The position numbers and the translations under genes were made by a program. A stretch of 64,000 nt of DNA from Adineta vaga (Eukaryota; Animalia; Rotifera). Location: assembly GCA_021613535.1 (NCBI GenBank), contig CP075496.1:1054001-1118000 (forward strand). Direction: 5' to 3'. A model generated the notes under the pieces. That model was given only the letters and a program-made list of their open reading frames with translations. It was not told the DNA's origin and did not search any database. This document shows, in pieces, positions 13,901 to 64,000 of the stretch. Each line of letters opens with the position of its first letter. The first letter of the stretch is position 1.

Positions 13901-15164
13901 TACGCATATTAATCACAGCTTGTACTCATACAGCAATAAATAATCTTCTGTCTTCAATTGAACAATTGAAAAAACTCTTTTCATCGTCATCACAATTTCC
14001 TCAATGGTATAAATTAGCAAATGAATTAAAAATAATGAAAATTGATTCAACTAATTATCGTGATATTTCTTCTTTGAAAGGAGATTATCCTTTTGTTATT
14101 GGATCAACTGGATGGACATTACAAAAACTCGATCGTTCTATTATTTTCGATGTGATTTTGGTTGATGAAGCAACTCAATTATTAACCAGTGATGCTGTTT
14201 TAGCATTGAATCGTTTAGCTAATCATGATGAATCACGATTAATTGTAGCTGGTGATCCGTTACAATTACCACCTGTAAAACGTTGTTTATATCCAGCTTT
14301 ACCTCATCCTATTCCTGATCTATTTTCATCTCTTTTTCATTGTTTATTACGTGATGTAAACAATAGTCCAATATCTTTACACACAGAAAAACCATTCGAG
14401 CAAATATCCCGTTGTCCATATTTATCTATTTTTGATGAAAATCATCGTAAATTGTTTTCTTCATATCGAATTTTCTTTCGTTTTCATTTCGTTTTCTTCT
14501 AGGAATGAATGAGCAATTATCTGATTTTACTCGTCTCTTATATGGTGAAAGTTATCGTCAAGGTCGTTCAAAACCTCTACTCTCTATTCGTTCCATTGAT
14601 AATTCAAAAAAGTATCTTCTTGGATCACTTCTTGAACGATATAGTTCACTCTATACATTACTGATTGATTCATCACCACCATCTTCATTTACAACTCGCA
14701 CTGATGATCTTACGCTTGAATCACGTCTTGTTTATTCTCTTATCGAAGAACTTATTTTACGGATAGCTCCTACATCAATATTTGTCATAACTCCACATCG
14801 AATGCAACGTTCTGCTATTCAACAAAAACTTTCGAAAAATCCATTTCCAACTGTTTCTATTACTTGTGATACCGTCGAAAGAATGCAAGGAAAAGAAGCT
14901 CAATGTGTAATACTTTGTATGTTATATCGACAAGCTGAAATACTTGAAAATGAATTAGATTTTATTTACAATCGACAGCGAATTAATGTTAGTATAACAC
15001 GTGCACAACAATTATGTATACTATTAACATCACATTTATTAGTTAATCAACCACCATTAGAAATATTTGTGGATGGAAATACAAGAAATGCTTATACTCT
15101 ATTGAGTAATTATGTGAATAAATCTACGATACAATATCTGGATAATGAAGGCAACATAAAATAA
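10969..15164 (+). CDS. PD-(D/E)XK (RecB/Cas4/Dna2-like, Fe-S) nuclease fused to SF1 DNA2/NAM7-type helicase. Exons 10969-11072, 11119-11762, 11814-12743, 12796-13785, 13835-14446, 14503-15164.
   Basis: Nuclease motifs RCDEYL, KPDFL, IADAKSS, QVALY, CSLCSFASRC. Helicase motifs GPPG|TGKT, TACTHTAINN, DEATQ, GDPLQLPP, ENH|RM, ITPHRMQ, TVERMQGKE, RINVSITRAQ. Five GT-AG introns join the ORF-track pieces in frame. Confidence 0.88.
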
Positions 15165-15691
15165 TTCAACTACTTTTAACATATAGAAAAATGTAATCCA
15201 ATTCATTTTAATCGTATTCGTGTTCAACTATTAGTTTTTTTGTATAAAATAAAATCTTAGATAATATCAGATTGTTTACAAACATTGTCATTCTATAACT
15301 ATCCTACTTTTAGTACAACGTATGATTTGATATGTACAGTTAATATCACAATTGTGTTTCTACATGATGATAATTATTATAGTATTATCGTAAATTGAAT
15401 TTGATAACAAAGGCAAACGTGTATCCCATAATACAAAACTATAACTGTGTACAATATCGTTCGAATACTTACATGATTGATTTCAAATAGTACACAACTA
15501 GCATGAAAGAAAATTGATATAGATAAGTAAATATGTTCCGTATTAATTTATTTATTTCGAACCAAAAATAAGATGTACTGATTAATAAAATTTAAAAGTG
15601 ACATTTATAATCAAAATTTTTTTCCGGTTTCCCAAAAAATATCTAGTACATCATCTAGCTAAACAAAGTCTTTTTCGTTCGTTAATAATAA

Positions 15692-18600
15692 TCATTTTCC
15701 ACTATTCGAAGTACTACCTGAACATACATTACAATTACATGATCGAATGCGTCGAATTTCCACAGTTTTTTGTACTGGTTCATTTTGTAAACCATCAACA
15801 AAACAATCAAAAATAACGGGTTGCAAGTATGTTTCTCCAACTGAACAGCAAGTACATTGATCATCGCTATCAGATTCACATTGGCCACTGCAACGTTCTC
15901 GAGGAATATTTTCACGTGATATACATTGATCTTTATTGATTCGTAATGGAGCACTGTCAAATTGATGAACTGAGCACTTATCATGACATACATTACAGCT
16001 GCATGACTTGATACGTTGAATCGTTATGACCTTCTCGACTGTTTGTGTTGTTGAACCATCGACGAAACAATCAAAGAGAACAGCTTGTGATTCAGTTTCT
16101 CCAATTCCACAACATTTACATTGATCGCTGCTATCAGATTCGCAATAACCACCACAACGTTCTCGTGGAAAACTGTTGCGAGATATACATTTGCCATTAT
16201 TCACCTTAATTGGGCCATTGTCATACTGTTGCATGGTACATTCGGTACTATTAGTTATCGGTGTTGTTGTTTGCATGGTGGTCGTTGTTACTAAACACTG
16301 ATTGTTAGATAATTTCAAACCGTCAGCTGTACAATATACGATATAACAACGATCTCGTGTACGAATTATTGTGCCCTGTTCCACAGTATCATTGATGTAA
16401 ACAATATTTTGGGACTCCGTAGTACCATTTACATAGGTATGAATGTAACCAATTTCTTCTACAAAAACAATGACATATAATTCCGGTGTCGCAACGACAT
16501 ATGAACTTACTATCGGAAGTTGGTTCTTTCTTGAAAACACGAATGTAAAATGCTTCATCAAGCAAACATTCACAACGACGATTTATACACGATTGATGCT
16601 CAAGTAACTGTTCGTTGCTACAACTAATCGATGAACTTCCGTTACGCGAACGTGTCTTGTATCCAATACCACATGTACGACTACATGGTGTCCATTCAGA
16701 CCATTCTGACAATGAACATGTTCTATCTGTTGTTGTCGTCTCCGTTACTAATGAAAACCGAAAGACTATAAAACTCACATATACACTTTCTATTCTTCTT
16801 ACCAAATGATGAACAAGCATAAACTTCAACATGAAGATTTTTCACCTCGCCATTCGGGCTGATACGAATCTTCGTTGCATTCAATGTTGTGGGTAATATT
16901 AGTTCATTGTTTGTCAATACAGATCCCTGAAATGAAACAAATTGAGAAAAATTCACACCTGAAGCTCTACATACATTATCAAAAGCGATCCACCGTGGAT
17001 AAATATCCGATGCCGATTGAAAATACAAACGCCACTCTTTCAAGTTAACACCATTCAGTCGAATACGACCGATCTACAAAGAAAATGAATATACATTTGC
17101 TTTCCCCTGTCATGAATATTCGTATCTTACCTCAACTCCATGGCGATAGTCGATGTTCAATGACGAGAAGGCCGATGATGGTGTCCATCCAGTACCATTC
17201 GCACGGATCACAAATCCTACAACAGTAGTTTCTCCTTTGGTTGTTTCCGTAATAGAATCTGCATTTAATAAGCCCAACTCTTCATCTAAAGAATCCTCTG
17301 TTTGACATCTATGTGGTACGCTTGGTGTAGTGGTAGTTTCATTTGCACTAATACTGGTTGCTCCACTTGTAACAAGAGTGGTAGTTCCTTGGCTTCCTGA
17401 ATGACCGGTTGCTGTTGTGAACTCAGTATTTGGTTTAGTTATGGTGGTGTCTGAAAATAGGTTTAAGGTTATAGATTATTACCATCATTATCAGACAAAA
17501 CGACGAATGACTAAGCCTAAAACTTACCAAATGTTGCCTCGACACATGCTTTGATGTCCAAAATAACACCTTTCGGTGATGGCCGTCGGTTGTTAGAATA
17601 ACAGTGATATAGACGCGTCCAATATCACTCGTCGATGGTACCTTGTTAGAGTCAACCGTTGCTGGTTTGCTCTTGTCATTGTTTCGACTAACACTCGATT
17701 CGATAGGTTTCTCATTGATCTTCTTTCCGTCGGGCGAATAGAATGTCACTTCAAACTGTTCGACATTGCCATTTGGTGTTTTGTCACGTGGAAGAGTGAC
17801 TGATTGTACTTCAGCTGGTTTATCAAATGTAACAATGATTGTTGGATTCATTTGAGCTGGAGGAAAGACACACCTATTACTGATGTCGGTTGAAATTCCA
17901 CATTCTTGCCTTCTGGAAGCTCACCGGGTGTAACTATAATCTTCTTACTCACAGCTTCATCAACAGCCTGCATTTCTTGACATTGTCTTGTCGTAGATCC
18001 GATTACTGGCGTAGTAGAAGCACCGAAAATAGTGGAGAGGAAGGTAACAACCGATGTACTTCCACTTCCACTGCTGACTACTGTTGATGATAGACTCGCA
18101 AAGTGCTCTGAGCCGCAACTGTTGTTTGTCCTGGTTGTGTTGTTTGACCAACAACCGTAGTTTGACCTGGTGCTAATGTTTGTCCTGGTTGTGTTGTTTG
18201 ACCTGGTGCTAATGTTTGTCCTGGTTGTGTTGTTTGACCAGCTACTGTAGTTTCACCTGGTGCTAATGTTTGTCCTGGTTGTGTAGTTTGACCTGGTGCT
18301 AATGTTTGACCTGGTTGTGTTGTTTGACCAGCTACTGTTGTTTCACCTGGTGCTAATGTTTGTCCTGGTTGTGTTGTTTGACCAGCTACTGTTGTCTCAC
18401 CTGGTGCTAATGTTTGGCCTGGTTGTGTGGTTTGACCGGGTTGTGTTGTTTGACTTGCTACTGTTGTCTCACCTGGTGCTAATGTTTGTCCTGGTTGTGT
18501 TGTTTGACCAGCTACTGTTGTCTCACCTGGTGCTAATGTTTGGCCTGGTTGTGTAGTTTGGCCAGCTACTGTAGTTTCACCTGGTGCTAATGTTTGTCCT

Positions 18601-21600
18601 GGTTGTGTGTAGTTTGACCTGGTGCTAATGTTTGTCCCGGTTGTGTAGTTTGACCAGCTACTGTAGTTTCACCTGGTGCTAATGTTTGTCCTGGTTGTGT
18701 AGTTTGACCAGCTACTGTAGTTTCACCTGGTGCTAATGTTTGTCCTGGTTGTGTAGTTTGGCCAGCTACTGTAGTTTCACCTGGTGCTAATGTTTGTCCT
18801 GGTTGTGTAGTTTGACCTGGTGCTAATGTTTGTCCCGGTTGTGTAGTTTGACCAGCTACTGTAGTTTCACCTGGTGCTAATGTTTGTCCTGGTTGTGTAG
18901 TTTGACCAGCTACTGTAGTTTCACCTGGTGCTAATGTTTGTCCTGGTTGTGTAGTTTGACCAGCTACTGTTGTTTCACCTGGTGCTAATGTTTGTCCTGG
19001 TTGTGTAGTTTGACCAGCTACTGTTGTTTGACCTGGTGCTAATGTTTGTCCTGGTTGTGCATCTACAACTTGCACAACTTCTTCGCATTTGTCCTGGTGC
19101 TAATGTTTGTCCTGGTTGTGTAGTTTGACCAGCTACTGTTGTTTCACCTGGTGCTAATGTTTGTCCTGGTTGTGTAGTTTGGCCTGCTACTGTAGTTTGT
19201 CCTGGTGCTAATGTTTGTCCTGGTTGTGTAGTTTGACCAACAACCTGTTGTTTCACCTGGTGCTAATGTTTGTCCTGGTTGTGTAGTTTGGCCTGCTACT
19301 GTAGTTTGTCCTGGTGCTAATGTTTGTCCTGGTTGTGTAGTTTGACCAGCTACTGTAGTTTGACCTGGTTGTGTTGTTTGGCCTGCTACTGTAGTTTGAC
19401 CTGGTTGTGTTGTTTGACCTGCTACTGTTGTTTGACCTGGTGCTGTTGTTTGTCCTGGTTGTGTTGTTTGACCAGCTACTGTTGTTTCACCTGGTGCTAA
19501 TGTTTGTCCTGGTTGTGTTGTTTGACCAGCTACTGTTGTTTCACCTGGTGCTAGTGTTTGGCCTGGTTGTGTTGTTTGACCAGCTACTGTTGTTTCACCT
19601 GGTGCTAGTGTTTGTCCTGGTTGTGTGGTTTGACCAGCTACTGTTGTCTCACCTGGTGCTAATGTTTGTCCTGGTTGTGTCGTTTGATCAGCTACTGTTG
19701 TTTGACCTGGTTGTGTTGTTTGACCAGCTACTGTTGTCGTCTCTGAAAAATATAATCGTCAGAATTGAAAATATTGTTCATGCTGATTTTCGAACTAGTG
19801 TACATACCTTTTGTTGATTCAACACAGGCTTTGATATCTAACACAATGCCTTTTGGTGATAGACTATCAGTTGTTTGAAGAACAGTGATTGCAATACGTG
19901 CAACTAGTTGATTAGCTGGTGTTTTGCTAGAATCAACTGTGGCCGGTTGAGTCTTGTCATTAGTTGGACTCAACGTTGACAGGATTGGTGCATTATTGAT
20001 CTGGTTGCCATCAGGTCCGTAGAATGTGACACTGAATTGTGCAATATTAGCATTGGCAATTGTGTCACGTGGGATGGTGACAGATGTAATCTCGGCTAGT
20101 TTCAAAACTGTGACAATGATGTCAGGATTGAGAAATGGTGCAGGGAAAGAAACACCAATCGTAGACGTTGGTTGAAATTTCAATTTATCAGCTTGTGAGA
20201 TGACACCTGGATTGGTAACAATGCGTTGACTGACAAGTGCATCCACAACTTGCACAACTTCTTCGCATCTTTTGGGTGTTGTTTGACCAGCTACTGTAGT
20301 TTCACCTGGTGCTAATGTTTGTCCTGGTTGTGTAGTTTGACCAGCTACTGTAGTTTGACCTGGTGCTAATGTTTGTCCTGGTTGTGTAGTTTGACCAGCT
20401 ACTGTTGTTTCACCTGGTGCTAATGTTTGTCCTGGTTGTGTAGTTTGACCAGCTACTGTTGTTTGACCTGGTGCTAATGTTTGTCCTGGTTGTGTAGTTT
20501 GGCCTGCTACTGTAGTTTGTCCTGGTGCTAATGTTTGTCCTGGTTGTGTAGTTTGACCAGCTACTGTTGTTTCACCTGGTGCTAATGTTTGTCCTGGTTG
20601 TGTAGTTTGACCAGCTACTGTAGTTTCACCTGGTGCTAATGTTTGTCCTGGTTGTGTCGTTTGACCAGCTACTGTTGTTTCACCTGGTGCTAATGTTTGT
20701 CCTGGTTGTGTCGTTTGACCAGCTACTGTAGTCTGACCTGGTGCTAATGTTTGTCCTGGTTGTGTAGTTTGACCAGCTACTGTAGTTTGACCTGGTTGTG
20801 TTGTTTGGCCTGCTACTGTAGTTTGACCTGGTTGTGTTGTTTGGCCTGCTACTGTAGTTTGACCTGGTGCTAATGTTTGTCCTGGTTGTGTAGTTTGGCC
20901 AGCTACTGTTGTTTCACCTGGTGCTAATGTTTGTCCTGGTTGTGTAGTTTGACCAGCTACTGTAGTTTCACCTGGTGCTAATGTTTGTCCTGGTTGTGTA
21001 GTTTGACCAGCTACTGTTGTTTCACCTGGTGCTAATGTTTGTCCTGGTTGTGTAGTTTGACCAGCTACTGTAGTTTCACCTGGTGCTAATGTTTGTCCTG
21101 GTTGTGTAGTTTGACCAGCTACTGTTGTTTCACCTGGTGCTAATGTTTGTCCTGGTTGTGTAGTTTGGCCTGCTACTGTAGTTTGTCCTGGTGCTAATGT
21201 TTGTCCTGGTTGTGTAGTTTGACCAGCTACTGTAGTTTGACCTGGTTGTGTTGTTTGGCCTGCTACTGTAGTTTGACCTGGTTGTGTTGTTTGGCCTGCT
21301 ACTGTAGTTTGACCTGGTGCTAATGTTTGTCCTGGTTGTGTAGTTTGACCAGCTACTGTTGTTTCACCTGGTGCTAATGTTTGTCCTGGTTGTGTAGTTT
21401 GACCAGCTACTGTAGTTTGACCTGGTGCTAATGTTTGTCCTGGTTGTGTAGTTTGACCAGCTACTGTAGTCTGACCTGGTGCTAATGTTTGTCCTGGTTG
21501 TGTCGTTTGATCAGCTACTGTTGTTTGACCTGGTTGTGTTGTTTGACCAGCTACTGTTGTCGTCTCTGAAAAATATAATCGTCAGAATTGAAAATATTGT

Positions 21601-24600
21601 TCATGCTGATTTTCGAACTAGTGTACATACCTTTTGTTGATTCAACACAGGCTTTGATATCTAACACAATGCCTTTTGGTGATAGACTATCAGTTGTTTG
21701 AAGAACAGTGATTGCAATACGTGCAACTAGTTGATTAGCTGGTGTTTTGCTAGAATCAACTGTGGCCGGTTGAGTCTTGTCATTAGTTGGACTCAACGTT
21801 GACAGGATTGGTGCATTATTGATCTGGTTGCCATCAGGTCCGTAGAATGTGACACTGAATTGTGCAATATTAGCATTGGCAATTGTGTCACGTGGGATGG
21901 TGACAGATGTAATCTCGGCTAGTTTCAAAACTGTGACAATGATGTCAGGATTGAGAAATGGTGCAGGGAAAGAAACACCAATCGTAGACGTTGGTTGAAA
22001 TTTCAATTTATCAGCTTGTGAGATGACACCTGGATTGGTAACAATGCGTTGACTGACAAGTGCATCTACAACTTGCACAACTTCTTCGCATCTTTTGGGT
22101 GTTGTCTGACCAGCTACTGTAGTTTGACCTGGTGCTAATGTTTGTCCTGGTTGTGTCGTTTGACCAGCTACTGTTGTTTCACCTGGTGCTAATGTTTGTC
22201 CTGGTTGTGTTGTTTGACCAGCTACTGTTGTTTGACCTGGTGCTAATGTTTGTCCTGGTTGTGTTGTTTGACCAGCTACTGTTGTTTGACCTGGTGCTAA
22301 TGTTTGTCCTGGTTGTGTTGTTTGACCAGCTACTGTTGTTTCACCTGGTGCTAATGTTTGTCCTGGTTGTGTGGTTTGACCAGCTACTGTTGTTTCACCT
22401 GGTGCTAATGTTTGTCCTGGTTGTGTTGTTTGACCAGCTACTGTAGTTTGACCTGGTGCTAATGTTTGTCCTGGTTGTGTAGTTTGACCAGCTACTGTTG
22501 TTTCACCTGGTGCTAATGTTTGTCCTGGTTGTGTAGTTTGACCAGCTACTGTTGTTTCACCTGGTGCTAATGTTTGTCCTGGTTGTGTTGTTTGACCAGC
22601 TACTGTTGTTTCACCTGGTGCTAATGTTTGTCCTGGTTGTGTCGTTTGACCAGCTACTGTTGTTTGACCTGGTGCTAATGTTTGTCCTGGTTGTGTCGTT
22701 TGACCAGCTACTGTAGTTTGACCTGGTGCTAATGTTTGTCCTGGTTGTGTAGTTTGGCCAGCTACTGTTGTTTCACCTGGTGCTAATGTTTGTCCTGGTT
22801 GTGTCGTTTGACCAGCTACTGTAGTTTGACCTGGTGCTAATGTTTGTCCTGGTTGTGTAGTTTGGCCAGCTACTGTAGTTTCACCTGGTGCTAATGTTTG
22901 TCCTGGTTGTGTTGTTTGACCAGCTACTGTTGTTTCACCTGGTGCTAGTGTTTGGCCTGGTTGTGTGGTTTGACCAGCTACTGTTGTTTCACCTGGTGCT
23001 AATGTTTGTCCTGGTTGTGTTGTTTGACCAGCTACTGTTGTTTCACCTGGTGCTAGTGTTTGGCCTGGTTGTGTGGTTTGACCGGGTTGTGTTGTTTGAC
23101 CAGCTACTGTTGTTTCACCTGGTGCTAGTGTTTGGCCTGGTTGTGTGGTTTGACCGGGTTGTGTTGTTTGACCAGCTACTGTTGTTTCACCTGGTGCTAG
23201 TGTTTGGCCTGGTTTTGGCCTGGTTGTGTTGTTTGACCCTGGTTGTGTTGTTTGACCAGCTACTGTTGTCTCTGACCACCCTGCTAATGTTTGTCCTGGT
23301 TGTGTTGTTTGACCAGCTACTGTTGTTTCACCTGGTGCTGTTGCCTGGTTGTTGACCAGCTACTGTTGTTTGACCTGGTTGTGTTGTTTGACCAGCTACT
23401 GTTGTTTGACCTGGTGCTGTTGTTTGACCTGGTTGTGTTGTTTGACCAGCTACTGTTGTTTGACCTGGTTGTGTTGTTTGACCAGCTACTGTTGTTTCAC
23501 CTGGTGCTAATGTTTTGTCCTGGTTGTGTCGTTTGACCAGCTACTGTGTTTGACCTGGTGGCTAATGTTTGTCCTGGTTGTGTCGTTTGACCAGCTACTG
23601 TGTTTGACCTGGTGCTAATGTTTGTCCTGGTTGTGTAGTTTGACCAGCTACTGTAGTTTGACCTGGTGCTAATGTTTGTCCTGGTTGTGTTGTTTGACCA
23701 GCTACTGTTGTTTCACCTGGTGCTAGTGTTTGACCTGGTGCTAATGTTTGTCCGGGTTGTGTTGTTTGACCAGCTACTGTTGTTTCACCTGGTGCTAGTG
23801 TTTGTCCTGGTTGTGTGGTTTGACCAGCTACTGTTGTTTCACCTGGTGCTAGTGTTTGTCCTGGTTGTGTAGTTTGGCCAGCTACTGTTGTTTCACCTGG
23901 TGCTAATGTTTGTCCTGGTTGTGTCGTTTGACCAGCTACTGTAGTTTGACCTGGTGCTAATGTTTGTCCTGGTTGTGTCGTTTGACCAGCTACTGTAGTT
24001 TGACCTGGTGCTAATGTTTGTCCTGGTTGTGTGGTTTGACCAGCTACTGTTGTTTCACCTGGTGCTAATGTTTGTCCTGGTTGTGTGGTTTGACCAGCTA
24101 CTGTTGTTTCACCTGGTGCTAGTGTTTGTCCTGGTTGTGTGGTTTGACCAGCTACTGTTGTTTCACCTGGTGCTAATGTTTGTCCTGGTTGTGTTGTTTG
24201 ACCAGCTACTGTTGTTTCACCTGGTGCTAATGTTTGTCCTGGTTGTGTGGTTTGACCAGCTACTGTAGTTTGACCTGGTGCTAATGTTTGTCCTGGTTGT
24301 GTTGTTTGACCAGCTACTGTTGTTTCACCTGGTGCTAATGTTTGTCCTGGTTGTGTTGTTTGACCAGCTACTGTAGTTTGACCTGGTGCTAATGTTTGTC
24401 CTGGTTGTGTGGTTTGACCAGCTACTGTTGTTTCACCTGGTGCTAATGTTTGTCCTGGTTGTGTTGTTTGACCAGCTACTGTTGTTTGACCTGGTGCTAA
24501 TGTTTGTCCTGGTTGTGTCGTTTGACCAGCTACTGTAGTTTGACCTGGTGCTAATGTTTGTCCTGGTTGTGTAGTTTGGCCAGCTACTGTTGTTTCACCT

Positions 24601-27600
24601 GGTGCTAATGTTTGTCCTGGTTGTGTCGTTTGACCAGCTACTGTAGTTTGACCTGGTGCTAATGTTTGTCCTGGTTGTGTCGTTTGACCAGCTACTGTAG
24701 TTTGACCTGGTGCTAATGTTTGTCCTGGTTGTGTAGTTTGGCCAGCTACTGTTGTTTCACCTGGTGCTAATGTTTGTCCTGGTTGTGTAGTTTGACCAGC
24801 TACTGTAGTTTGACCTGGTGCTAATGTTTGTCCTGGTTGTGTTGTTTGACCAGCTACTGTTGTTTCACCTGGTGCTAGTGGTTTGACTGTGTTGTTTGAC
24901 CAGCTACTGTTGTTCTACCTGCGCTAATAGTGTTTGGTCCCTGGTTGTGTTAGGTTTGACTAGCTACCTGTTGTTTCACCTGGTGCCAGTGTTTGTCCTG
25001 CTGTGTGGTTAAACCATTCTAGTGTGTACCAGCTACCGCTGTCTCGCACCGGGTGCCACAATGTTTGTCCTGGTTGTGTTGTTTGACCAGCTACCTGATT
25101 GCTTGTTGTTGATCACCTGGTTGTGTTGTTTGGCCTCCATTAGTTGGTTGTGCCATGGACCACAATGTTGTTTCACCTGGTGCGCTCGTTTGGCCTGGTT
25201 GTGTGGTTTGACCGGGTTGTGTTGTTTGACCAGCTACTGTTGTTTCACCTGGTGCTAGTGTTTGGCCTGGTTGTGTGGTTTGACCGGCTTGTGTTGTTTG
25301 ATTATTGGTGCAGGAAAGAAGCACTGATATTAGACGTTGGTTCGAAATTTCAATTGTCAAACTGATGACACCTGGATTGGTAACAATAAATTTGACTACC
25401 AGCTACTGTAGTTTCACCTGGTGCTAATGTTTGTCCTGGTTGTGTGTTTGACCAGCTACTGTAGTTTGACCTGGTGCTAATGTTTGTCCTGGTTGTTGTT
25501 TGACCAGCTACTGTTGTTTCACCTGGTGCTAATGTTTGTCCTGGTTGTGTGTTTGACCAGCTACTGTTGTTTGACCTGGTGCTAATGTTTGTCCTGGTTG
25601 TGTTGTTTGACCAGCTACTGTAGTTTGTCCTGGTGCTAATGTTTGTCCTGGTTGTGTAGTTTGACCAGCTACTGTTGTTTCACCTGGTGCTAATGTTTGT
25701 CCTGGTTGTGTAGTTTGACCAGCTACTGTAGTTTCACCTGGTGCTAATGTTTGTCCTGGTTGTGTCGTTTGACCAGCTACTGTAGTTTGACCTGGTGCTA
25801 ATGTTTGTCCTGGTTGTGTAGTTTGGCCAGCTACTGTTGTTTCACCTGGTGCTAATGTTTGTCCTGGTTGTGTCGTTTGACCAGCTACTGTAGTTTGACC
25901 TGGTGCTAATGTTTGTCCTGGTTGTGTAGTTTGGCCAGCTACTGTAGTTTCACCTGGTGCTAATGTTTGTCCTGGTTGTGTAGTTTGGCCAGCTACTGTT
26001 GTTTCACCTGGTGCTAATGTTTGTCCTGGTTGTGTAGTTTGACCAGCTACTGTTGTTTCACCTGGTGCTAATGTTTGTCCTGGTTGTGTTGTTTGACCAG
26101 CTACTGTTGTTTCACCTGGTGCTAATGTTTGTCCTGGTTGTGTAGTTTGACCAGCTACTGTAGTTTGACCTGGTGCTAATGTTTGTCCTGGTTGTGTAGT
26201 TTGGCCAGCTACTGTTGTTTCACCTGGTGCTAATGTTTGTCCTGGTTGTGTCGTTTGACCAGCTACTGTAGTTTGACCTGGTGCTAATGTTTGTCCTGGT
26301 TGTGTAGTTTGGCCAGCTACTGTAGTTTCACCTGGTGCTAATGTTTGTCCTGGTTGTGTAGTTTGGCCAGCTACTGTTGTTTCACCTGGTGCTAATGTTT
26401 GTCCTGGTTGTGTAGTTTGACCAGCTACTGTAGTTTGACCTGGTGCTAATGTTTGTCCTGGTTGTGTTGTTTGACCAGCTACTGTTGTTTCACCTGGTGC
26501 TAATGTTTGTCCTGGTTGTGTTGTTTGACCAGCTACTGTTGTTTCACCTGGTGCTAGTGTTTGGCCTGGTTGTGTGGTTTGACCAGCTACTGTTGTTTGA
26601 CCTGGTGCTAATGTTTGTCCTGGTTGTGTTGTTTGACCAGCTACTGTTGTTTCACCTGGTGCTAATGTTTGTCCTGGTTGTGTGGTTTGAGCTACCGTTG
26701 TCTCACCAGAATTGCTATATTGTTGGTTGACCAGTACTGTTGTTGTCCTGGTGCTACAGTTTGGTTGTTGTTGTTTGATAACAGTTTGTAGGTTTGACCT
26801 GGTGTTTGCTGTTGTTTGTTGTGGTTGACCAACTACCGTTGTTTGGTGCTCTTGTTTGTTGTCCTTGTGTGGTTTGACCAGTTACCGTTGTCTCACCGGG
26901 TGCTAATGTTTGTCCACCTGTGTTGTTTGATAGTGGCCAGCTGTTGTTTCACCTGGTGCTAATGTTTGTCCTGGTTGTGTAGTTTGACCAGCTACTGTAG
27001 TTTGACCTGGTGCTAATGTTTGTCCTGGTTGTGTAGTTTGACCAGCTACTGTTGTTTCACCTGGTGCTAATGTTTGTCCTGGTTGTGTAGTTTGACCAGC
27101 TACTGTTGTTTGACCTGGTGCTAATGTTTGTCCTGGTTGTGTAGTTTGGCCTGCTACTGTAGTTTGTCCTGGTGCTAATGTTTGTCCTGGTTGTGTAGTT
27201 TGACCAGCTACTGTTGTTTCACCTGGTGCTAATGTTTGTCCTGGTTGTGTTGTTTGACCAGCTACTGTAGTTTGACCTGGTGCTAATGTTTGTCCTGGTT
27301 GTGTTGTTTGACCAGCTACTGTTGTTTGACCTGGTGCTGTTGTTTGGCCTGGTTGTGTGGTTTGACCTGGTTGTGTTGTTTGACCAGCTACTGTTGTTTC
27401 ACCTGGTGCTAATGTTTGTCCTGGTTGTGTTGTTTGACCAGCTACTGTTGTTTGACCTGGTGCTAATGTTTGTCCTGGTTGTGTTGTTTGACCAGCTACT
27501 GTTGTTTGACCTGGTTGTGTTGTTTGACCAGCTACTGTTGTTTCACCTGGTGCTAATGTTTGACCTGGTTGTGTTGTTTGACCAACTACTGTAGTTTGAC

Positions 27601-54600: not shown

Positions 54601-57600
54601 GTGGTTTGACCGGGTAGAGTTGACTGACCTGGAACTGTGGGTGGTGGTGTTTGACCCGGTTGAGTGCTTTGACCAGGTTGAGTTGACTGGCCTGGTGGTG
54701 TTGGCTGACCTGGAACAGTGGGTGGTGGTGTTTGACCAGGTTGAGTTGACTGACCTGGTGGTGTTGGCTGACCTGGAACTGTGGGTGGTGGTGTTTGACC
54801 AGGTTGAGTTGACTGACCTGGAACTGTGGGTGGTGGTGTTTGACCCGGTTGAGTGCTTTGACCGGGTTGAGTTGACTGGCCTGGAACTGTGGCTGGTGGT
54901 GTTTGGCCGGGTTGAGTGGTTTGACCTGGGACTGTTGCTTGGCCAGGTTGAGTAGTTTGACCTGAAACTGTGGGTGGTGGTGTTTGACCAGGTTGAGTTG
55001 ACTGACCTGGTGGTGTTGGCTGACCTGGAACTGTGGGTGGTGGTGTTTGACCAGGTTGAGTTGACTGACCTGGTGGTGTTGGCTGACCTGGAACTGTGGG
55101 TGGTGGTGTTTGACCAGGTTGAGTGCTTTGACCGGGTAGAGTTGACTGACCTGGAGGTGTTGGCTGACCTCGAACTGTGGGTGGTGGTGTTTGACCAGGT
55201 TGAGTTGACTGGCCTGGTGGTGTTGGCTGACCTGGAACTGTGGGTGGTGGTGTTTGACCAGGTTGAGTGGTTTGACCGGGTAGAGTTGACTGACCTGGAA
55301 CTGTGGGAACTGTGGTTTGACCAGGTTGAGTGGTTTGACCAGGTTGAGTTGACTGGCCTGGTGGTGTTGGCTGACCTGGAACAGTGGGTGGTGGTGTTTG
55401 ACCAGGTTGAGTTGACTGACCTGGTGGTGTTGGCTGACCTGGAACTGTGGGTGGTGGTGTTTGACCAGGTTGAGTTGACTGACCTGGAACTGTGGGCTGT
55501 GGTGTTTGACCCGGTTGAGTGCTTTGACCGGGTTGAGTTGACTGGCCTGGAACAGTGGTGGTGGTGTTTGGCCTGGTTGAGTGGTTTGACCTGGGACTGT
55601 TGCTTGGCCAGGTTGAGTAGTTTGACCTGAAACTGTGGGTGGTGGTGTTTGACCAGGTTGAGTTGACTGACCTGGTGGTGTTGGCTGACCTGGAACTGTG
55701 GGTGGTGGTGTTTGACCAGGTTGAGTTGACTGACCTGGTGGTGTTGGTTGACCTGGAACAGTTGGTGGTGGTGTTTGGCCTGGTTGAGTGGTTTGACCTT
55801 GTTGAGTTGACTGGCCTGGTGGTGTTGGTTGACCTGGAACAGTTGGTGGTGGTGTTTGACCAGGTTGAGTTGACTGGCCTGGTGGTGTTGGCTGACCTGG
55901 AACTGTGGGTGGTGGTGTTTGACCAGGTTGAGTGCTTTGACCGGGTAGAGTTGACTGACCTGGTGGTGTTGGCTGACCTGGAACAGTGGGTGGTGGTGTT
56001 TGACCAGGTTGAGTGGTTTGACCGGGTAGAGTTGACTGACCTGGAACTGTGGGTGGTGGTGTTTGACCCGGTTGAGTGCTTTGACCAGGTTGAGTTGACT
56101 GGCCTGGTGGTGTTGGCTGACCTGGAACAGTGGGTGGTGGTGTTTGACCAGGTTGAGTTGACTGACCTGGTGGTGTTGGCTGACCTGGAACTGTGGGTGG
56201 TGGTGTTTGACCAGGTTGAGTTGACTGACCTGGAACTGTGGCTGTATGTGCCGTGGTGGTGTTTGACCCTGGTTGAGTGGTTTGACCTTGAGTTGACTGG
56301 CCTGGAACTGTGGCTGGTGGTGTTTGGCCGGGTTGAGTGGTTTGACCTGGGACTGTTGCTTGGCCAGGTTGAGTAGTTTGACCTGAAACTGTGGGTGGTG
56401 GTGTTTGACCAGGTTGAGTTGACTGACCTGGTGGAGTTGGCTGACCTGGAACTGTGGGTGGTGGTGTTTGGCCAGGTTGAGTTTGACCGAGGTTGTGTTG
56501 GTTGACCTGGAACAGTGGGTGGTGGTGTTTGACCAGGTTGAGTGCTTTGACCGGGTAGAGTTGACTGACCTGGTGGTGTTGGCTGACCTGGAACTGTGGT
56601 GGTGGTGTTTGGCCTGCTTTGACCGGGTTGAGTTGACTGGCCTGGAACTGTGGCTGGTGGTGTTTGGCCAGGTTGAGTGGTTTGACCAGGTTGTGTTGGT
56701 TGACCTGGAACAGTTGGTGGTGGTGTTTGGCCTGGTTGAGTGTTTGACCAGGTTGAGTTGACTGGCCTGGAACTGTGGCTGGTGGTGTTTGGCCGGGTTG
56801 AGTGGTTTGACCTGGTACTGTTGCCTGGCCTGGTTGAGTGGGTTGACCTGAAAGAGTGGGTGGTGGTGTTTGACCGGGTTGAGTTGACTGACCTGGTGGT
56901 GTTGGCTGACCTGGAACTGTGGGTGGTGGTGTTTGACCAGGTTGAGTTGACTGACCTGGTGGTGTTGGCTGACCTGGAACTGTGGGTGGTGGTGTTTGAC
57001 CAGGTTGAGTGCTTTGACCGGGTTGTGTTGACTGGCCTGGTGGTGTTGGTTGACCTGGAACAGTTGGTGGTGGTGTTTGGCCAGGTTGAGTGGTTTGACC
57101 AGGTTGTGTTGGTTGACCTGGAACAGTGGGTGGTGGTGTTTGACCAGGTTGAGTGCTTTGACCGGGTAGAGTTGACTGACCTGGTGGTGTTGACTGACCT
57201 GGTGGTGTTGACTGACCTGGAACTGTTGCTTGACCAGGTTGAGTGGTTTGGCCAGGTTGAGTGGTTTGACCGGGTTGTGTTGGTTGACCTGGAACAGTTG
57301 GTGGTGGTGTTTGGCCAGGTTGAGTGGTTTGACCAGGTTGTGTTGGTTGACCTGGAACAGTTGGTGGTGGTGTTTGGCCAGGTTGAGTGGTTTGACCAGG
57401 TTGTGTAGGTTGACCTGGAACAGTTGGTGGTGGTGTTTGACCTGGTTGAGTGGTTTGACCTGGAACTGTTGGTTTCGATGTTGACGCTATATCACTGGTC
57501 ACGCCAACAGTGCTACCAGACGACACCGGTGTTGTCACGGCGTTTGTTGTGCTTTGAATATTACTTCTAGTTGTGTCTTCCTGGATTTGGGCTTTTGTAC

Positions 57601-60600
57601 CCAATGGTTTAGGATCCGCACAACCGATGATACTCATTCGAACATTCGTTGGTGCTTTGCCATCACTTGTCTTAGAAATACCCACTGTTAATGGAATCAC
57701 ATCTTCCATATACGGAGAATAGTTAATAGCTGGACTCAATGGATTGTCACTGAATCGAGCTTCGTCATCGAAATCAGTCAATGCACTGATCTTTATGACT
57801 TTCGATTCTAGTGGATTCGTTATCGACACATTTTGGACAATCACTTCCTACAATTATACACAACTTGAAAACGTGACGAGTTCATATTGAATAGCCTACC
57901 TTGACAAAGGTAATATCAATTGTTCCTGGCAGGTTAGCAAGTGAAAAAGGAGCAGCTAGTGCATCTTTTGCGACTGGTTTGCCATTGAATTTAAGAGTGG
58001 CGAATAGTTGTGGTCCAAGGTTGGTAAGTTCAATAAGTTTTTCACAAACTAAAGAAGAAAACGTGTCGTGAATGAAGAAGAAGTTTTTATGGAAGGAAGA
58101 CTGACCTTTTGTAGGAGTTTTTGGAGTTGTTTTGACCGAATGTGTGGTGAGTGAGGTAGATGGTAGAGCTAGATGGAAAAGATGAAAGTTAGTTGAGAGA
58201 GAACTGTACTATGTCGTTCAGAGATAGTATGTTCACAAGATATTGCATGTGTTGTGATGTGTGAGCAAATTAAAGTGATCAAATTGAACACCGATGTAAT
58301 TAGAGCGGGAAATTAGTCATAAATCAAAATAATGGTGAGTTCCTTATTTATATTCAATATGAAAGAGAATTGGATCTGAACTAGAGCAAGGATTCAAAAG
58401 TATGCTAGTGAGAAATTGTATAATAATGGTCTGTTCGATTACAATCGAATAGGATTGCATATAAATACTCTTCCTATTTATTCATGTAGATTGACACTCA
58501 GATTGCTTATGTTGATAGCCTTGTTCGGCCATTTTGAAGCAGAAAAATCGTGGAATTGTAAAAGACGAATCGATGAACTTATGGACTTACTTGTTGTTGA
58601 TTGACCTGTAACTGTTGATGTTGTTGTTCCTGCGCTAACAGTTGTAGTATTCACACTACCTGGTGTTATGTCTAAATAAATATTTAATGAAGTATATTCA
58701 CTAATAATTGGATTTTTCGGAAAAATAAATACCAGATTCTGTCTGAGCTTTGGTGTTGAGTACGGATGGTTTACCGCAACCACGAATGGAAAATTTAATT
58801 GATTTTGGATACTGAATATTTCCGTTCGCAGCTTTCAATGTGAAAGTAACACCATAATTGAATTCCAAGTCACTTTCATAATTAACTTGAAAACCTTGGT
58901 CAAGGGTACGAGTATCATCAGTATTATCAGTTTTCACAGTTACTTGAGCTATCTGAGCATCTTTCAGATTAATAAGACCAGCTGATCTAATCGTTGCCTT
59001 GAAAATAAAGAGAACGACAGAATAAATTTGATAGCTATAGAGAATCAATAGAAACATATATAAAACTTACCTCTTTAGTCGTTTGAAATTGAACTTTCAT
59101 CGTTGGTTTTGTCATATCGAATGATCTTGGAAATGGTGCTGAAAGAGATTTGCCATCAACCACGACTTTTGAGAGATACATTTCATCCGTATCTACCATT
59201 TCCACTGGTGTTAAACAAGCTAAGAAGACAAAAAAATAATGAGAAGAATATTCAAATTAATTACTATACGAATATTTACCGTTCGATTGTGTTACAGGTG
59301 GAATTGTAGTAGAAACAGATGTAGTTGTTTTAGAAGTTTCAGTAGCTAAAAGAAATTTAATGCAAATTCTTGTTTCTAAACCTAAATGGTTACTACCGGA
59401 TAAAGTTGTAGGTGCGGCAGTTGATGTAAGTAACATTATACTTACTAAAAAGATTTCAAAAAAATAATTCATTGTATTGTAAACGAAAAATCTTTTCTCT
59501 ACCTGGGCTATAACAACCAGTTACTTCTAATCGCACAGCTGAGGGCGGTAGTCCATTTGTCGTTTTTAATATTTTAACAATAACTTCTTTAATACCACAT
59601 CGCATTTGAGCTTCTGTTACTGATGGACTATTATCTGCTGATCGTAAAGTAAATGTACTTCCATTGACTGCTTTCACGTCAGTTCCATCGACTGTTTTAT
59701 AACTGACTTCGATTTGTGCAACGTTCGATGTTGGACGTTCACCAGCAGTGATTTGAGCAGACACATCCGATACACAAATATGACTTGTAAAACGTGCATT
59801 AATCGTATAATCTTTCGATTGTCGTAAATTTTCACCTTTCATATTTTTATAAGCATTAGTGAAATCAGTTTTGGCTGCTGGTGAAGAATATCTTTCCATA
59901 TATTCACGAACTAAAATATTTTTCTTGTCACACCAACCTAAACATAGTTTATGAGAAGAAAATGAAATCTTTGATTTTTCTAAGAAAATTCGTACTTGAT
60001 TCAGCAATGGTAGTACCAACACGATTTGAACTTGTTGTTGTTTCCTGATCTAAAATTTCGAATTGGATATTATCAAACGAAAAGAAAGAATTACCAGCTT
60101 CGACTTGTGCTTTAGTACCGATTGCAGTTTTTCCTGTAAAACAACCATGAATTTCTAATTTCAAATCTTTTGGTGGTAGTTTATCTATTGTATTTGTGAT
60201 AACAATTGATAAGTTTGGTACATATTCTAATGTTGATGGAAAGGTAACTTCATTCAATGCTGGTGCTGTACTTGATACAGCATCATCTAATGCATCTGAA
60301 TTCACTTTTAATCCTGTAATTTTTGCTTGATCACCATTGATTAAACGAACTCGTTCCAAATCGACCTGAATATTGAATTGAATATTATTCTATTACAAAC
60401 AAAAATCAATGACTTACATCTTTACTGAAACTAATATCAATTTGATAAGGTAATCTATCAATGACGAGTGGTGAAGGTACATCAGCAAGAGATATTCTTT
60501 TATTTTGAATTGTAACACTTGAAAAAAGTTCTTTACTTAATTTAGTTAATTCAGTTAAATTAGTACAACCTAAAACAAACAAAAAATATACAAACAATGA

Positions 60601-63600
60601 GATATCAGATGAAAGATAACAAACGTTTTTTCATTGTTGATGATGGTTCTGATGTTGACAAAGTTGGTGGTGATGTGAAGTATGTTATGCCAGCTAGAGA
60701 AGAAACATGATTTGAATGGTTAAAAGAAAGAGAAATTCGATGGACATCAACTTACCTTGTTTAGTACAACCTAATACTTTCAAACGAAAATATTTGGGTT
60801 TGCCTTCACTTGTTTCAAGAATAGTTAAATTAAGTCCTTTCAAATCAGGAATGATGTCATGATGTACCATTAAACTCGAATCACTTGTAAATGTTAATAC
60901 TTTTCCTGTTTTAGGATCAAGATATGGTGTTCCATCCCAATTCAAATAATATAAACTATATTTCACAATATTAGTTGTTAAATCGTTATACGTTGGTTGT
61001 AGAGCAACTGTTGAAATACTTGTTGCTGCTGTGAAATAGGCTCGAACTGTTGGATTTTGTGTGAGAAATGTAACGCCAGTGCGATTTTCATATGCTTTCG
61101 AAAGATCTGATCGAATATTTGGTGAAGAATATTCAAGCATATTATATGGTTGCAATATATTTGTTATTTGACACCAAGAAGCTACAAGAAGAAAAAAAGA
61201 AATATAATCAATTTCAAATCTTCCCAACGAACCTGCTTTCACTGTTGTAGGATCTGCTTCAGTCTGAGCTTTTGTAGATATTATTAATGGATTACAACCA
61301 TCGATATAAAGTCGAATATTTTTTGGTGCTAAACCATCCATTGTCGCTCTTATGTCAAATGTTACCCTATATGAACGTTCCATATCAACAGTATTGGTTT
61401 GGATTAATGTTCCAACACTACTTCTATATTCAGGATATTCATCCAATGTTGCAATGAATTCATTTACATTAGTTCCATCTGCTCCAGCTAAAATTCCCAC
61501 ACGATCAATTGTTAATGGAATACGTAAATTAACAACAATTGAATATGCATTTGCTTTCGTTGGAAATGTATACCCAGTTGTGCTACTATCTTGAAATGTT
61601 TGTTTATCAACAACTATGTTATTTGCTTTGATGGATGAAATATAGGTAGTTGGTGATGCAAAAACACTTTGAGGATTTGGACAATGACCTAAGAATTAAT
61701 AATAAAAATATGATCTTGTATCAAAAGAAAATTAACTTACGTGAATTCGTAAGTGTTGAGGGTGATATTGTTGTTAATGGTTGACCAAGAATATATGTTG
61801 TAAGTGATGAAGTACAACCTCGAACAGCAAATCGTACATGTCGTGGTGCAGCTTTGTCTGTTGTATCACACAAACGTAGATTGATAAATTTTACACCTTC
61901 ATACCATCCTTCAATAAGTGGAGTATCATTTGATGAAACTAATTCAGGTACAACAGTTCCATTTGGAAAAGTTAATTGTTTTGAATTATAATCATACAAA
62001 GTAACACAAATTTGTCGTACATTACTTGTATCATTATTGTACTCAGGTTGAGTATGCATTTTCGTAACAATAACATTACTTGGTACCAATTTAATCATCA
62101 CTGATGGATTTGTATTTGGAAATGTTATACCTTTTGTATTCTCATAGAATTTACTAAAATCTGATCTCATACCCTTCGAAGTGATTGATTCAACATTGTA
62201 ATATGTAAGAATATTTTTTTCTTCACACAGTGCTAAATAAATCGATAATAGTTAGAATTATATAGATAATTCAATAGAAAACTTACGTCGATTGGCAATT
62301 TTAGTAACAGCTAAATAAACAAAAGATTTATTTTATAAGAATGAATTTCGTTCGATGATTGTTTATTTACCTGAAGGAGTTGTTGAATCATCTTCAATTT
62401 GAGCTTTTGTTCGTAATTGTTCTTCGTTAAAACAACCATTAAGAACAAGTTTAACATTTCTTGGTGGTTGACCATCAATCGTTCCTTGACTGGTTGTAAT
62501 AAGAATGTGTTCAATCGATTCAACATTAACAGAAACAATTTGTCCAACATAACTACCATAGAATGTCGATTCACCGTCATAAGTATCATATAATATATAA
62601 GTGATTGGTCCAATTATATTTGGCGAATTAGTTAAACCAATACTTGTTACACCCTTAATATTTTTTGTTACAATTGACCATTGAAGTTTATTACCAGTTT
62701 TCGCTGTTAAACCAGAAGATGTTAGTGCAAGTGCAGCATAATCAGTTGAACGTTGTCCATTAAGTTCCATTGAAAGGATTTTATTGGTTGGAATTGCCAT
62801 TAAATCAGTTGGATTTGGACATGATTTTACTAGAAAATATAATTGGTCATCTTAAAGAAATCTTTCATTCAAACATACATGAAGTAGGTACAGTTGTACT
62901 TGGAGCAACAGTTGGTACAATATATGTGACTAAATTTGCTAAAGAAGAAAGAAAAAATTGAGAAATGAAAAAGAGAATAGTTTGATTTATCTAACCTTTT
63001 GTATGACATCCAGTAACTTTAAGCCGAAGTCTTTGAACATTATCGTTATTATCAGTTTTTAAAACTTTGACTAAAATTCCTCGAACATCTTGAAAATCTC
63101 CCCAAATAATCGGTTCATTCTCAGGTGAAATCCATGTTAATGGTTGACCGGTCACTTCATTCTGGATAATTTTATCATTCGAATCATAAAATTGTGCTTG
63201 AATTTGTCGAACATTTCCTGGATAGTTTTTATAATCACGCTGAACTTCAACTTTGGAAACATATGCATGTCCATATTCTTTAAATTTGATTAAAACTTCG
63301 GGATCGTTCAATTTACAATTTTCACCATTTCGATCTTCATATGCTTGTGTCATATCCGATTTGCATTTACGAGAGTGAAATTCAAATTTGTCAACGTTGT
63401 CTCTTGTTAAAATATTACTTTCATGGCATAATGCTAAAAGATACACATACAAAATTAATTCGTTTATTCTTTTCATAACTTACGTCTTCTACCACCTTGT
63501 CCCTCACAGATTCGAACGAAGACTTGTAATGTTACATTCGATGCTACAGTTGATGAAGAATCTGTTTGTAAGATTTCCACACGAATACCATAGAATGGAA

Positions 63601-63963
63601 TATTTGGACAGATTTTATCTAAAGCATTATTTTCTCGTCCGAAGTCACTAATATGATTGATTTGCCAATTTTGTAATGCGGGATTTTCAATTGTATGATT
63701 GTTTTCATCAAGATATGATAAACGTATTTGCTTGACATTACTTCGTGGTGTTACAACTTGTACAAGTCCAATATTAATTGGTCGTTTAAAATAAACACGA
63801 AAATATCGTGATCTTGTTGATGGATTGAATTGAAAACCGGTTTTATTATTTCGAATAATCATTTCACGTAATGTGCCAAGTTGTTCACTTGCTTCACTAA
63901 TTTCAATGCGTTGTACATATGTGGAATCTTGCATAACATCATAAATTGGTGAACAATTACATG
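15692..63963 (-). CDS. Giant mucin/adhesive-like multidomain protein (5'-partial): ~28 discoidin/F5-8C-like modules, Thr/Gln/Pro/Gly hexapeptide spacers, TSP1 and two C-terminal cystine knots
   Basis: A continuous minus-strand exon chain with GT-AG introns runs from 63963 to the stop at 15692. Repeated ~150-aa modules begin with Cys and end (L/V)x(I/V)x(G/A)C. TSP1 reads WSEWTPCSRTCGIG...RSR, and the knots read CxGxC...CxCC...CxCxxC twice. Some frameshifts inside repeats look like assembly error. Confidence 0.8.
15722..16240 (-). other. Two tandem C-terminal cystine-knot-like domains (15986-16240 and 15722-15976; 88-aa period)
   Basis: C...CISR..PRERC(G/S)G(Y/Q)CESD...QC(K/T)CC...FDC...I(K/R)SC(S/N)CNVC occurs twice. 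Confidence 0.8.
16572..16718 (-). other. Thrombospondin type-1 repeat
   Basis: CSLSEWSEWTPCSRTCGIGYKTRSR...C...C...C. Confidence 0.9.
18120..30978 (-). repeat. Coding minisatellite, mostly 54-nt units (QTTQPG-QTLAPG-[E/Q]TTVAG), interrupted by three type-B1 modules (~19823-20268, 21646-22091, 29491-29936)
   Basis: Directly visible tandem 18-nt primitives combined into 36- and 54-nt units. Confidence 0.95.
31630..43459 (-). repeat. Coding minisatellite, mostly 36- and 54-nt units (QTTQPG-QTTVAG, with or without QTLAPG), interleaved with type-A and type-B2 modules
   Basis: Tandem gacctggttgtgttgtttggcctgctactgtagttt units. Six near-identical B2 modules (~34929-35372, 35883-36327, 37854-38298, 39258-39702, 41388-41832, 42325-42769) and A modules (~34093-34536, 40552-40993). 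Confidence 0.95.
44842..50647 (-). other. ~5.8-kb intron of the giant gene
   Basis: Donor ATGG|GTGAGT at 50647 after ...KACVEGSM. Acceptor TTTTCAG at 44842 before ASTSPFSTK. No convincing exon in between. Confidence 0.7.
51230..52170 (-). repeat. Intragenic duplicate of ~57450-58390 (type-C module, its exons, two short introns and part of the upstream long intron)
   Basis: Colinear match at an offset of ~6220 nt, near-identical up to ~51970 and clearly diverged beyond. Confidence 0.9.
52949..57465 (-). repeat. Pro/Thr-rich coding minisatellite (QTPPPTVPG, QPTPPG, QSTQPG, QSTLPG units)
   Basis: About 4.5 kb tandem array inside one exon, with a few indels that shift the ORF-track frame. Confidence 0.95.
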
Positions 63964-64000
63964 CTGAAATATTTTAAATGATTTTTTGTTGAAAAAAACA

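Follow-up and report, generated by a model that had tools for sequence, protein, structure and literature searches.

A giant bdelloid rotifer locus of predicted discoidin-fold beads, Thr-rich spacers and C-terminal cystine knots that may encode a mucin-like secreted polymer

The locus described here lies in a 64,000-nucleotide stretch of the Adineta vaga genome (contig 4, CP075496.1, of assembly GCA_021613535.1, positions 1,054,001 to 1,118,000), the whole of which is referred to as the window and supplies the coordinates used throughout. The minus strand carries all the coding signal of the locus, which extends over ~49 kb from a likely ATG at 64,643, upstream of the window, to a stop codon at 15,692-15,694. 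The G+C content is ~30% across the window, with values of 44-55% at 18-44 kb and 52-58 kb. Summing the exon lengths yields about 13,000 codons, if this is one gene, which agrees with the 12,000+ codons estimated, together with an extent of >48 kb, in a sequence-only reading that preceded this analysis; about 9,000 of the ~13,000 residues are spacer repeats. The same reading had proposed a beads-on-a-string anatomy with ~28 Cys-bracketed modules. This description held, in that the bead profile, the spacer arrays, the thrombospondin type 1 (TSP1) repeat and the cystine knots were all located, and, counted by position, 27 Cys-bracketed modules of 130-150 amino acids (beads) lie in the window and 1 upstream of it (Table 1).

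The beads fall into two classes. Those of class A start with sequences such as CQEMQAVDE or CEEVVQVVD (CxxxNIL in the N-terminal members) and end in DIKAC, and those of class B start with sequences such as CPNP, CTNL or CEKLIEL, are usually split by an intron and are followed by a TKAQ linker; M8, M10 and M11 are each interrupted by a predicted GT-AG intron of 52-73 nt at the identical position of the module. An iterated profile search of the minus-strand open reading frames (ORFs) of the window produced 25 matches, and an alignment of ten bead copies searched against the 100.8-Mb, six-contig genome produced 27, with 21 of these in the locus. Among 1.84 billion representative proteins, the profile matched just 166 at E below 0.001, and the named matches were bdelloid proteins, proteins of two echinoderm groups (weak) and bacterial Ig-like proteins (weak and probably unrelated). 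The crinoid matches, at E 1e-11 to 1e-23, are rich in the Pfam domain PF00754 (F5_F8_type_C). The beads of the window itself did not match PF00754, and the best match of the profile among PDB sequences was a Bacteroides chitobiase domain at E about 0.7; the close metagenomic homologues P0160 and P0161 score 29.8 and 29.3 bits with F5_F8_type_C over the bead (cut-off 28.2).

Structure prediction gave a clear picture of the bead fold. The AlphaFold2 model built from 51 sequences has a mean predicted local distance difference test score (pLDDT) of 95.3 and a predicted template modelling score of 0.90, and Foldseek assigned it to the galactose-binding-domain-like superfamily with probability 1.00. 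Using VIA-align, 135-139 of the 147 residues could be superposed on discoidin domains (neuropilin b1/b2, Dictyostelium discoidin I/II, CASPR2 and factor VIII C) with Z 11.6-13.1 and a root-mean-square deviation of ~3 Å, and in the Atlas structure search the nearest neighbours were a Rotifera cluster (TM 0.88) followed by F5_F8_type_C clusters. C1 and C147 are invariant in ten beads of the window, C147 is present in all 51 sequences, and the first and last cysteines of the bead align with the ends of the neuropilin b1 domain. Because Foldseek, VIA-align, Atlas and the Pfam-passing homologues agree, all beads are, as modelled, strongly diverged discoidin (F5/8C) domains, which is the galactose-binding/F5-8C jelly roll that had been expected from an AlphaFold check of the modules, run here with a pLDDT of 95.3 and Z up to 13.1.

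The beads are separated by short S/T-rich linkers at the N-terminal end and by long repeat arrays further on. A clean stretch of array 1 consists of 33% T, 25% Q and 17% G, and one of array 2, in which units of 63-144 nt encode PGQTPPPTVPGQPTQPGQ, of 31% P, 22% Q, 21% T and 15% G. With Thr at 21-33% and Pro at 8-31% across the arrays, both fall within the definition of Pro/Thr/Ser-rich (PTS) regions. Array 2 ends at a consensus donor, A|GTAAGT, at 52,949/52,948. An internal segmental duplication was observed between 57400-58300 and 51200-52100. It takes in the class-B bead exons with their small intron, ~300 nt of intron upstream of them and the beginning of array 2, of which the second copy (51200-52100) retains only a few repeat units; a third, older copy is found at 44.3-44.9 kb.

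The locus has an intact core, for which reading-frame continuity was tested by joining exons by script. It comprises the class-B bead M14 (44281-44715) and eleven class-A beads ending in DIKAC (M15-M25), and six of its seven introns are located 3' of a class-A bead, the seventh interrupting M14. Below 28 kb, ab initio exon chaining was uninformative, since GT...AG pairs within the repeats bridge any frame break. In the 1,953-codon ORF at 34,630-40,488, the in-frame, stop-free sequence GKHTTQRSSDVSSILNCNIYIFSG, which follows the A' beads (34930-42768), resembles a short intron, and this ORF therefore probably spans several introns.

The 3' end of the locus was compared with contigs of four public runs (X1, X2, X5 and X7) placed on 15,000-18,118. 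The contigs of X1, X2 and X7, which originate from two studies, skip five short introns (CT..AC on the plus strand, that is, GT..AG on the minus strand) but those of X5 are unspliced, indicating that X1, X2 and X7 are RNA and X5 is DNA. Single bases are missing from the assembly after 17,579, 17,862 and 18,098 (C, A and A on the plus strand); the extra base is found in every covering RNA contig at all three sites and, at 17,862, also in the X5 DNA contig. These sites coincide with one-base slips of the assembled reading frame within and immediately ahead of the last bead. When the three missing bases and the five RNA joints were applied by script, a 712-codon open frame was obtained, extending from 18,118 to the stop. 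The last 712 codons of the locus are transcribed, spliced and open-framed. The depth of the RNA contigs is 47-83 here compared with 0-13 at the neighbouring gene, although this is a weak measure of expression. The frame encodes, in order, the end of the spacer, the last bead, a Thr-rich linker, a Cys-bracketed module on three exons, a TSP1 repeat, a Cys-containing stretch and two cystine knots.

The TSP1 repeat (CSLSEWSEWTPCSRTCG) contains WSxW-like and CSxTCG motifs and exceeds the gathering score of PF00090. Both it and the last knot pass Pfam, and the first knot scores 15.3 bits with its cysteines conserved, so that the TSP1 repeat and two knots named in the sequence-only reading can be retained. 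In homologues of the last exon (45-81% identity) all cysteines of knot 1 are invariant in 13 of 13 sequences, and nearly all those of knot 2 are kept in the 12 homologues that reach it. The AlphaFold2 model of the last exon (14 sequences) is of low confidence (pLDDT 57) and displays paired long hairpins in knot 1; Foldseek yielded no match below E 0.001 for this model, and its top rows, sclerostin, the VWF CK domain, PDGF and VEGF, lend weak support to the assignment. The last exon did not match any PDB sequence. The same reading had called the terminal Cys-bracketed module discoidin-like. The fold is not limited to this module, as all beads are modelled with it, and the signs of it in the terminal module are weak: the counterpart in Didymodactylos carnosus has F5_F8_type_C clusters as language-model neighbours at 0.87-0.89, which is a lead only, and hhalign detected no relation between the bead family and the terminal module of a relative. 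The terminal module is possibly F5/8C-like.

At the opposite end, the ATG at 64,643 opens MFILLSILFISIPQT, from which the predicted path leads in frame into M1 by way of a 23-nt exon and two introns, one of 61 nt with a GTAAGT donor before this exon and one of 65 nt with a GTAATT donor after it, giving MFILLSILFISIPQTTAQSSSTPICQCNQ. The product of this three-exon build, MFILLSILFISIPQTTA|QSS, looks like a signal peptide with cleavage after TTA, a good candidate for the one that had been sought in an upstream exon. Between 61 and 66% of the sampled words of 58,000-63,990 are present in runs X7-X9, of which X7 is RNA by its splicing and X8 and X9, belonging to the same sample and study, were assumed to be RNA; the N-terminal bead block is therefore very probably transcribed too.

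Table 1. Features of the locus in window coordinates; positions above 64,000 are upstream of the window.
Feature	Coordinates	Strand	Remarks
Coding locus	15,692-64,000 in the window, plus ~640 bases past the window end	minus	
Candidate signal-peptide exons and M1	64,643-64,031 (window-equivalent)	minus	from sequence
Bead M1	64,044-64,445 (window-equivalent)	minus	upstream of the window
Bead M2	63506-63955	minus	C...C, 150 aa; first in the window; profile E 2.7e-37
N-terminal bead block M3-M11	57620-63428	minus	two classes alternate; short S/T-rich linkers
Beads M3, M4, M5, M6, M7	63006-63428, 62432-62821, 61814-62227, 61294-61683, 60766-61173	minus	
Beads M8, M9, M10, M11	60141-60567, 59513-59932, 58776-59217, 57620-58046	minus	
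Spacer array 2	52950-57500	minus	PGQTPPPTVPGQ-type repeats, about 1,500 codons
Putative 1,121-nt intron	51828-52948	minus	GTAAGT donor, TTTAG acceptor, both phase 1; sequence only
Exon block with M12 and M13	50648-51827	minus	M12 (class B) 51399-51825, short spacer, M13 (class A) 50664-51104
AT-rich 5.9-kb stretch	44718-50647	minus	long intron or intergenic space
Intact core	28100-44717	minus	5,384 stop-free codons (44,715-28,100) via 7 GT-AG introns; 413+ hexapeptide units
Core introns	44509-44568, 43461-43529, 40467-40535, 34569-34630, 34009-34077, 30979-31047, 29411-29475	minus	GT-AG, 60-69 nt
Spacer array 1	18.1-44 kb	minus	units of 18, 36 and 54 nt encoding TTVAGQ, TTQPGQ, TLAPGQ
Spacer array 1, continued	18119-28099	minus	with M26, M27 and two bead remnants
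Beads M26, M27	21644-22075, 19821-20252	minus	inside the continuation of array 1
Bead M28	17529-17988	minus	last class A; frame restored by two bases missing in the assembly
RNA-confirmed introns (region 16459-17528)	17451-17527 (variant 17452-17529), 17074-17130, 16926-16973, 16748-16802, 16459-16510	minus	
Terminal Cys-bracketed module	16813-17307	minus	CQTEDS...EVYAC; three exons by RNA joints; kept in A. ricciae P0277
Thrombospondin type 1 repeat	16572-16718	minus	Pfam TSP_1 31.5 bits (cut-off 21.6); TSP1_CCN 28.5 (cut-off 27)
Cystine knot 1	15986-16240	minus	11 Cys, CGGYC and CSC; Pfam Cys_knot 15.3 bits, under the cut-off of 24
Cystine knot 2	15722-15976	minus	11 Cys, CSGQC and CNC; Cys_knot 25.9 bits (15,695-15,970; cut-off 24)
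Stop codon and 3' untranslated region	15536-15694	minus	RNA contigs of three runs end at 15,536-15,538, ~155 nt past the stop

Two further observations were made at the 3' end. Between 17528 and 17715, the RNA contigs exist in two variants of equal depth (~25 each in X1), with 5 and 9 differences from the reference and with intron ends at 17450/17528 and 17451/17530, the latter with one extra G; these are probably two alleles, neither of which matches the reference. In addition, the plus-strand gene that converges on the locus (ORFs to 15,164) is transcribed as well, with RNA contigs that end at 15,152-15,212, which leaves ~320 nt between the two 3' ends.

The architecture had not been recognised as that of a named protein. 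It is not unique to this gene, being shared by a small family whose other, smaller members occur both in this genome and in those of other rotifers. The nearest named relatives are from Adineta ricciae (up to 81% identity), A. steineri, Rotaria species and Didymodactylos carnosus, which fits a rotifer, the source guessed in the sequence-only reading. The Rotaria socialis protein A0A818FMK6 (P0027) combines five beads, a PTS region and a C-terminal cystine knot (CTCK), and in a similarly compact paralogue on contig 6 of A. vaga (4,991,566-5,000,263; L007, L008) two beads flank a PTS exon of 2,452 codons, built of a different repeat, and a knot follows. Other distant paralogues are located on contig 4 (1,672,954-1,673,886) and contig 6 (5,655,161-5,658,395), and the genome search returned only such distant paralogues and no close second copy (ohnologue) of the giant gene. 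The metagenomic rotifer contig L010 includes four bead-spacer units that lead into an orthologous cassette, and the Didymodactylos protein P0055 has four TSP1 repeats and a TIL domain, with a Cys-rich end, in which Pfam scored no knot, following a long Cys-rich stretch. The 3,014-amino-acid frame P0001, from a 12,156-nt metagenome contig in ENA, contains 15 practically identical units of a bead and a Thr-rich spacer and is an extreme, recently amplified form of the bead-spacer architecture. The literature search recovered no paper on rotifer adhesive proteins, mucins, mucus or secreted polymers, nor on these relatives.

The explanation that we favour, with somewhat better than even confidence, is that the locus is one bdelloid gene for a secreted, mucin-like polymer of ~13,000 residues, of which the secretion, glycosylation and disulfide-linked polymerisation are inferred by analogy. 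The short signal peptide would direct the chain into the endoplasmic reticulum (ER), where the ~29 discoidin-fold beads would fold, each stapled by its first-to-last Cys pair, and the C-terminal cystine knots would form intermolecular disulfides, as in VWF and the gel-forming mucins. The Thr-rich hexapeptide arrays, with one Thr in three residues, would be O-glycosylated and become stiff, hydrated spacers; outside the cell, the lectin-like beads, offering many weak binding sites, and the knots could then tie the chains into a gel or a sticky film. Twelve relatives also keep the tandem knots, and in the absence of a VWD these might provide the second linkage that chains require. A bolder version, which we regard as rather a long shot, is a VWD-free polymer in which each chain bonds two partners through its C-terminal pair of 11-Cys knots, generating chains or networks, the ~29 beads being multivalent binders of glycans or surfaces and the PGQ/AGQ-punctuated Thr-rich spacers being glycosylated and perhaps elastic tethers. 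If this version is true, the material could be the foot cement of bdelloids or a protective gel of these drying-tolerant animals.

Several observations weigh against the favoured explanation. As assembled, the reading frame switches ~30 times within the repeat arrays (~25 times at 18-28 kb and five times in array 2), and three breaks were open to testing. Most of the switches coincide with repeat units of 16, 17, 19 or 20 nt rather than 18, and, because all three tested breaks proved to be omissions of the assembly, we extend this result to the others, which are probably consensus errors of a poorly polished assembly rather than signs of decay. Two truncated beads, near 25,370 and 19,080, could be traces of decay or of misassembly. 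With little Ser and much Gln and Gly, the spacers are also atypical of mucin PTS regions. A Pfam search covering the ORFs of the N-terminal exons, together with the exon that lies upstream of the window, revealed no VWD, C8, TIL or other N-terminal multimerisation domain, nor any other Pfam family. The signal peptide, as well as the joins 50,648-44,717 and 52,949-51,827, is read from the genomic sequence, the RNA contigs having been placed on 15,000-18,118, and an intron of 5.9 kb filled with repeats is unusual beside the introns of 43-138 nt elsewhere in the locus. The predicted homodimer of the knot pair, which we list here, returned no verdict and is evidence in neither direction.

The most serious competitor of a single gene is a pair of adjacent genes of the same family, one at ~64.6-50.5 kb (signal peptide, 13 beads and array 2) and the other at ~44.8-15.7 kb (beads, array 1 and the TSP1-knot cassette), with repeat-derived DNA between them. 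The intervening 44.8-50.5 kb are a mosaic of dispersed-repeat fragments, with 59 genome matches at 69-91% identity, many of them near contig ends, and are far longer than the other introns; the ORFs within them showed neither a Pfam family nor a coding signal. Without splicing at the 50,648 donor, the open frame would extend by 37 codons to a stop at 50,535-50,537. The two halves also differ in the type of spacer repeat, and the RNA contigs in hand, covering 15,000-18,118, do not span the 5.9-kb stretch. Nevertheless, M13 ends in a consensus donor (G|GTGAGT, 50,648) at the place that is usual for class-A beads, whereas the exon at 44,717 follows an acceptor and lacks a start codon, leader, in-frame Met and signal peptide, and the DNA upstream of 44,717 is homologous to intron sequence in both other copies of the duplicated unit. 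Donor and acceptor are both of phase 1, so that the frame continues across the stretch. Moreover, the locus has a single signal-peptide candidate at its 5' end and a single knot cassette at its 3' end; on the two-gene arrangement, the upstream half would be left without a knot or terminal domain and the downstream half without a means of ER entry. Two genes are, in our judgement, the less likely arrangement, and one gene with a single transcript, as read from the exon signals, is the probable one, though by a modest degree of confidence.

Some further details bear on the same region. The 3' part of the putative intron at 51828-52948 and the exon that follows it duplicate 57.4-58.3 kb. The 44800-50500 segment resembles decayed transposable-element debris. 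In the metagenomic rotifer contig L011, ~6.4 kb devoid of long ORFs (3083-9489) separate the last bead from the TSP1 exon, suggesting that long non-coding stretches within genes of this family may not be unique to A. vaga. Protein searches returned no sequence from A. vaga itself among the matches.

As to the function of the product, a cement of the pedal (foot) glands, that is, a temporary adhesive like flatworm ap1/ap2 or sea-star Sfp1, is a specific proposal that we consider unlikely. Bdelloids do attach by foot-gland secretions, the locus appears well represented in whole-animal RNA, and the architecture, a very large and repetitive mosaic of secreted appearance that includes lectin-like and TSP1 domains, recalls Mlig-ap2. 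However, the vWD-C8-TIL motif described as common to aquatic adhesives (PMC8621496) is absent from the scanned exons, and the literature search provided nothing on rotifer adhesive or mucin proteins. Thr-rich bottle-brush spacers would suit lubricating or protective gels equally well, and the RNA contigs are from whole animals.

Still less probable is a polymer of extracellular matrix or defence, of the hemocytin/hemolectin or SCO-spondin type, which would clot, agglutinate or form fibres instead of mucus. The combination of discoidin, TSP1 and CTCK also occurs in SCO-spondin and insect hemocytin, and the Didymodactylos relative P0055 adds four TSP1 repeats and a TIL domain; yet SCO-spondin and hemocytin contain VWD, TIL and LDLa domains and are not known to have long Thr-rich arrays, as against the ~9,000 of ~13,000 residues that are spacer here. 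Finally, it is highly improbable that the locus is a pseudogene in decay, or that the assembly has collapsed and shuffled its repeats into an artefact of which only the ends are gene-like: the frame switches, the two bead remnants, the repeat-derived DNA inside the locus and the lack of a close second copy would fit it, but three of three testable frame breaks are assembly omissions that are not in the reads, the 3' exons are spliced and apparently well represented among the RNA contigs, the core remains intact over 5,384 codons, and the cysteines of the conserved C-terminal cassette are invariant.

The locus and its small family, which are expressed and conserved in bdelloids, are concrete candidates for rotifer secreted polymers. 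For the evolution of mucins, they present a giant CTCK-ended, PTS-rich polymer in which a discoidin fold replaces CysD and no VWD assembly was found, and this VWD-less architecture raises the question of how such a chain multimerises. Furthermore, no automatic gene model of the locus would survive the single-nucleotide omissions within and next to its repeats, so that similar giant repeat genes may be absent from annotations or fragmented in them.

The likeness to cystine-knot polymers that the sequence-only reading had drawn is borne out by the CTCK and the PTS arrays. In VWF and the gel-forming mucins, disulfide bonds formed in the ER join CTCK domains into dimers, and dense brushes of O-glycans are built on Thr-rich arrays. 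The protein predicted here shares with this group (MUC2, MUC5AC, MUC5B, MUC6 and VWF) a giant, secreted-type mosaic, Thr/Pro-rich arrays interrupted by small disulfide-stapled domains, an 11-Cys cystine knot at the C-terminus and exons that are symmetric in phase 1. It differs from them in that no VWD-C8-TIL was found, that a discoidin fold takes the place of CysD, that two knots stand in tandem and that the spacers are T/Q/G/P hexapeptides with almost no Ser. Discoidin domains typically bind sugars, lipids or proteins, and the bead is alike in fold to the F5/8C domains of neuropilin (b1/b2), discoidin I, CASPR2 and factor V/VIII (C) and to CBM32, at 7-14% identity. Going by their descriptions, the adhesives Mlig-ap2 and sea-star Sfp1 are likewise secreted mosaics of great size whose central repeats are huge. 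In Mlig-ap2, two large repeat regions occupy the centre and TIL and TSP-1 domains the C-terminus, and vWD-C8-TIL is described as a common motif of aquatic adhesive proteins, carried by both Mlig-ap2 and Sfp1 (PMC8621496), but was not found in any exon scanned here. Because the VWD assemblies that define the gel-forming mucins were not found and vWD-C8-TIL is absent from the scanned exons, we place the protein outside both families: it is a variant of the CTCK-polymer/mucin kind and a member of neither the gel-forming mucins nor the aquatic adhesives. Its true relatives are bdelloid. The CTCK proteins P0027, Rotaria sordida A0A813XS63 and the contig 6 paralogue follow the same logic of bead, PTS region, bead and CTCK, but are roughly a tenth of the size, have 2-5 beads and a single knot, and lack TSP1 and the terminal module. 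The cassettes of A. ricciae (P0277) and of metagenomic rotifers (P0278-P0289; contigs L010 and L011) are known from fragmentary contigs and differ in having shorter spacers of another repeat sequence, L010 also appearing to be without TSP1; even so, their last exons are 45-81% identical to that of A. vaga and retain both knots with their cysteines, and in A. ricciae P0277 the terminal module and TSP1 are joined exactly as in the RNA contigs of the giant locus.

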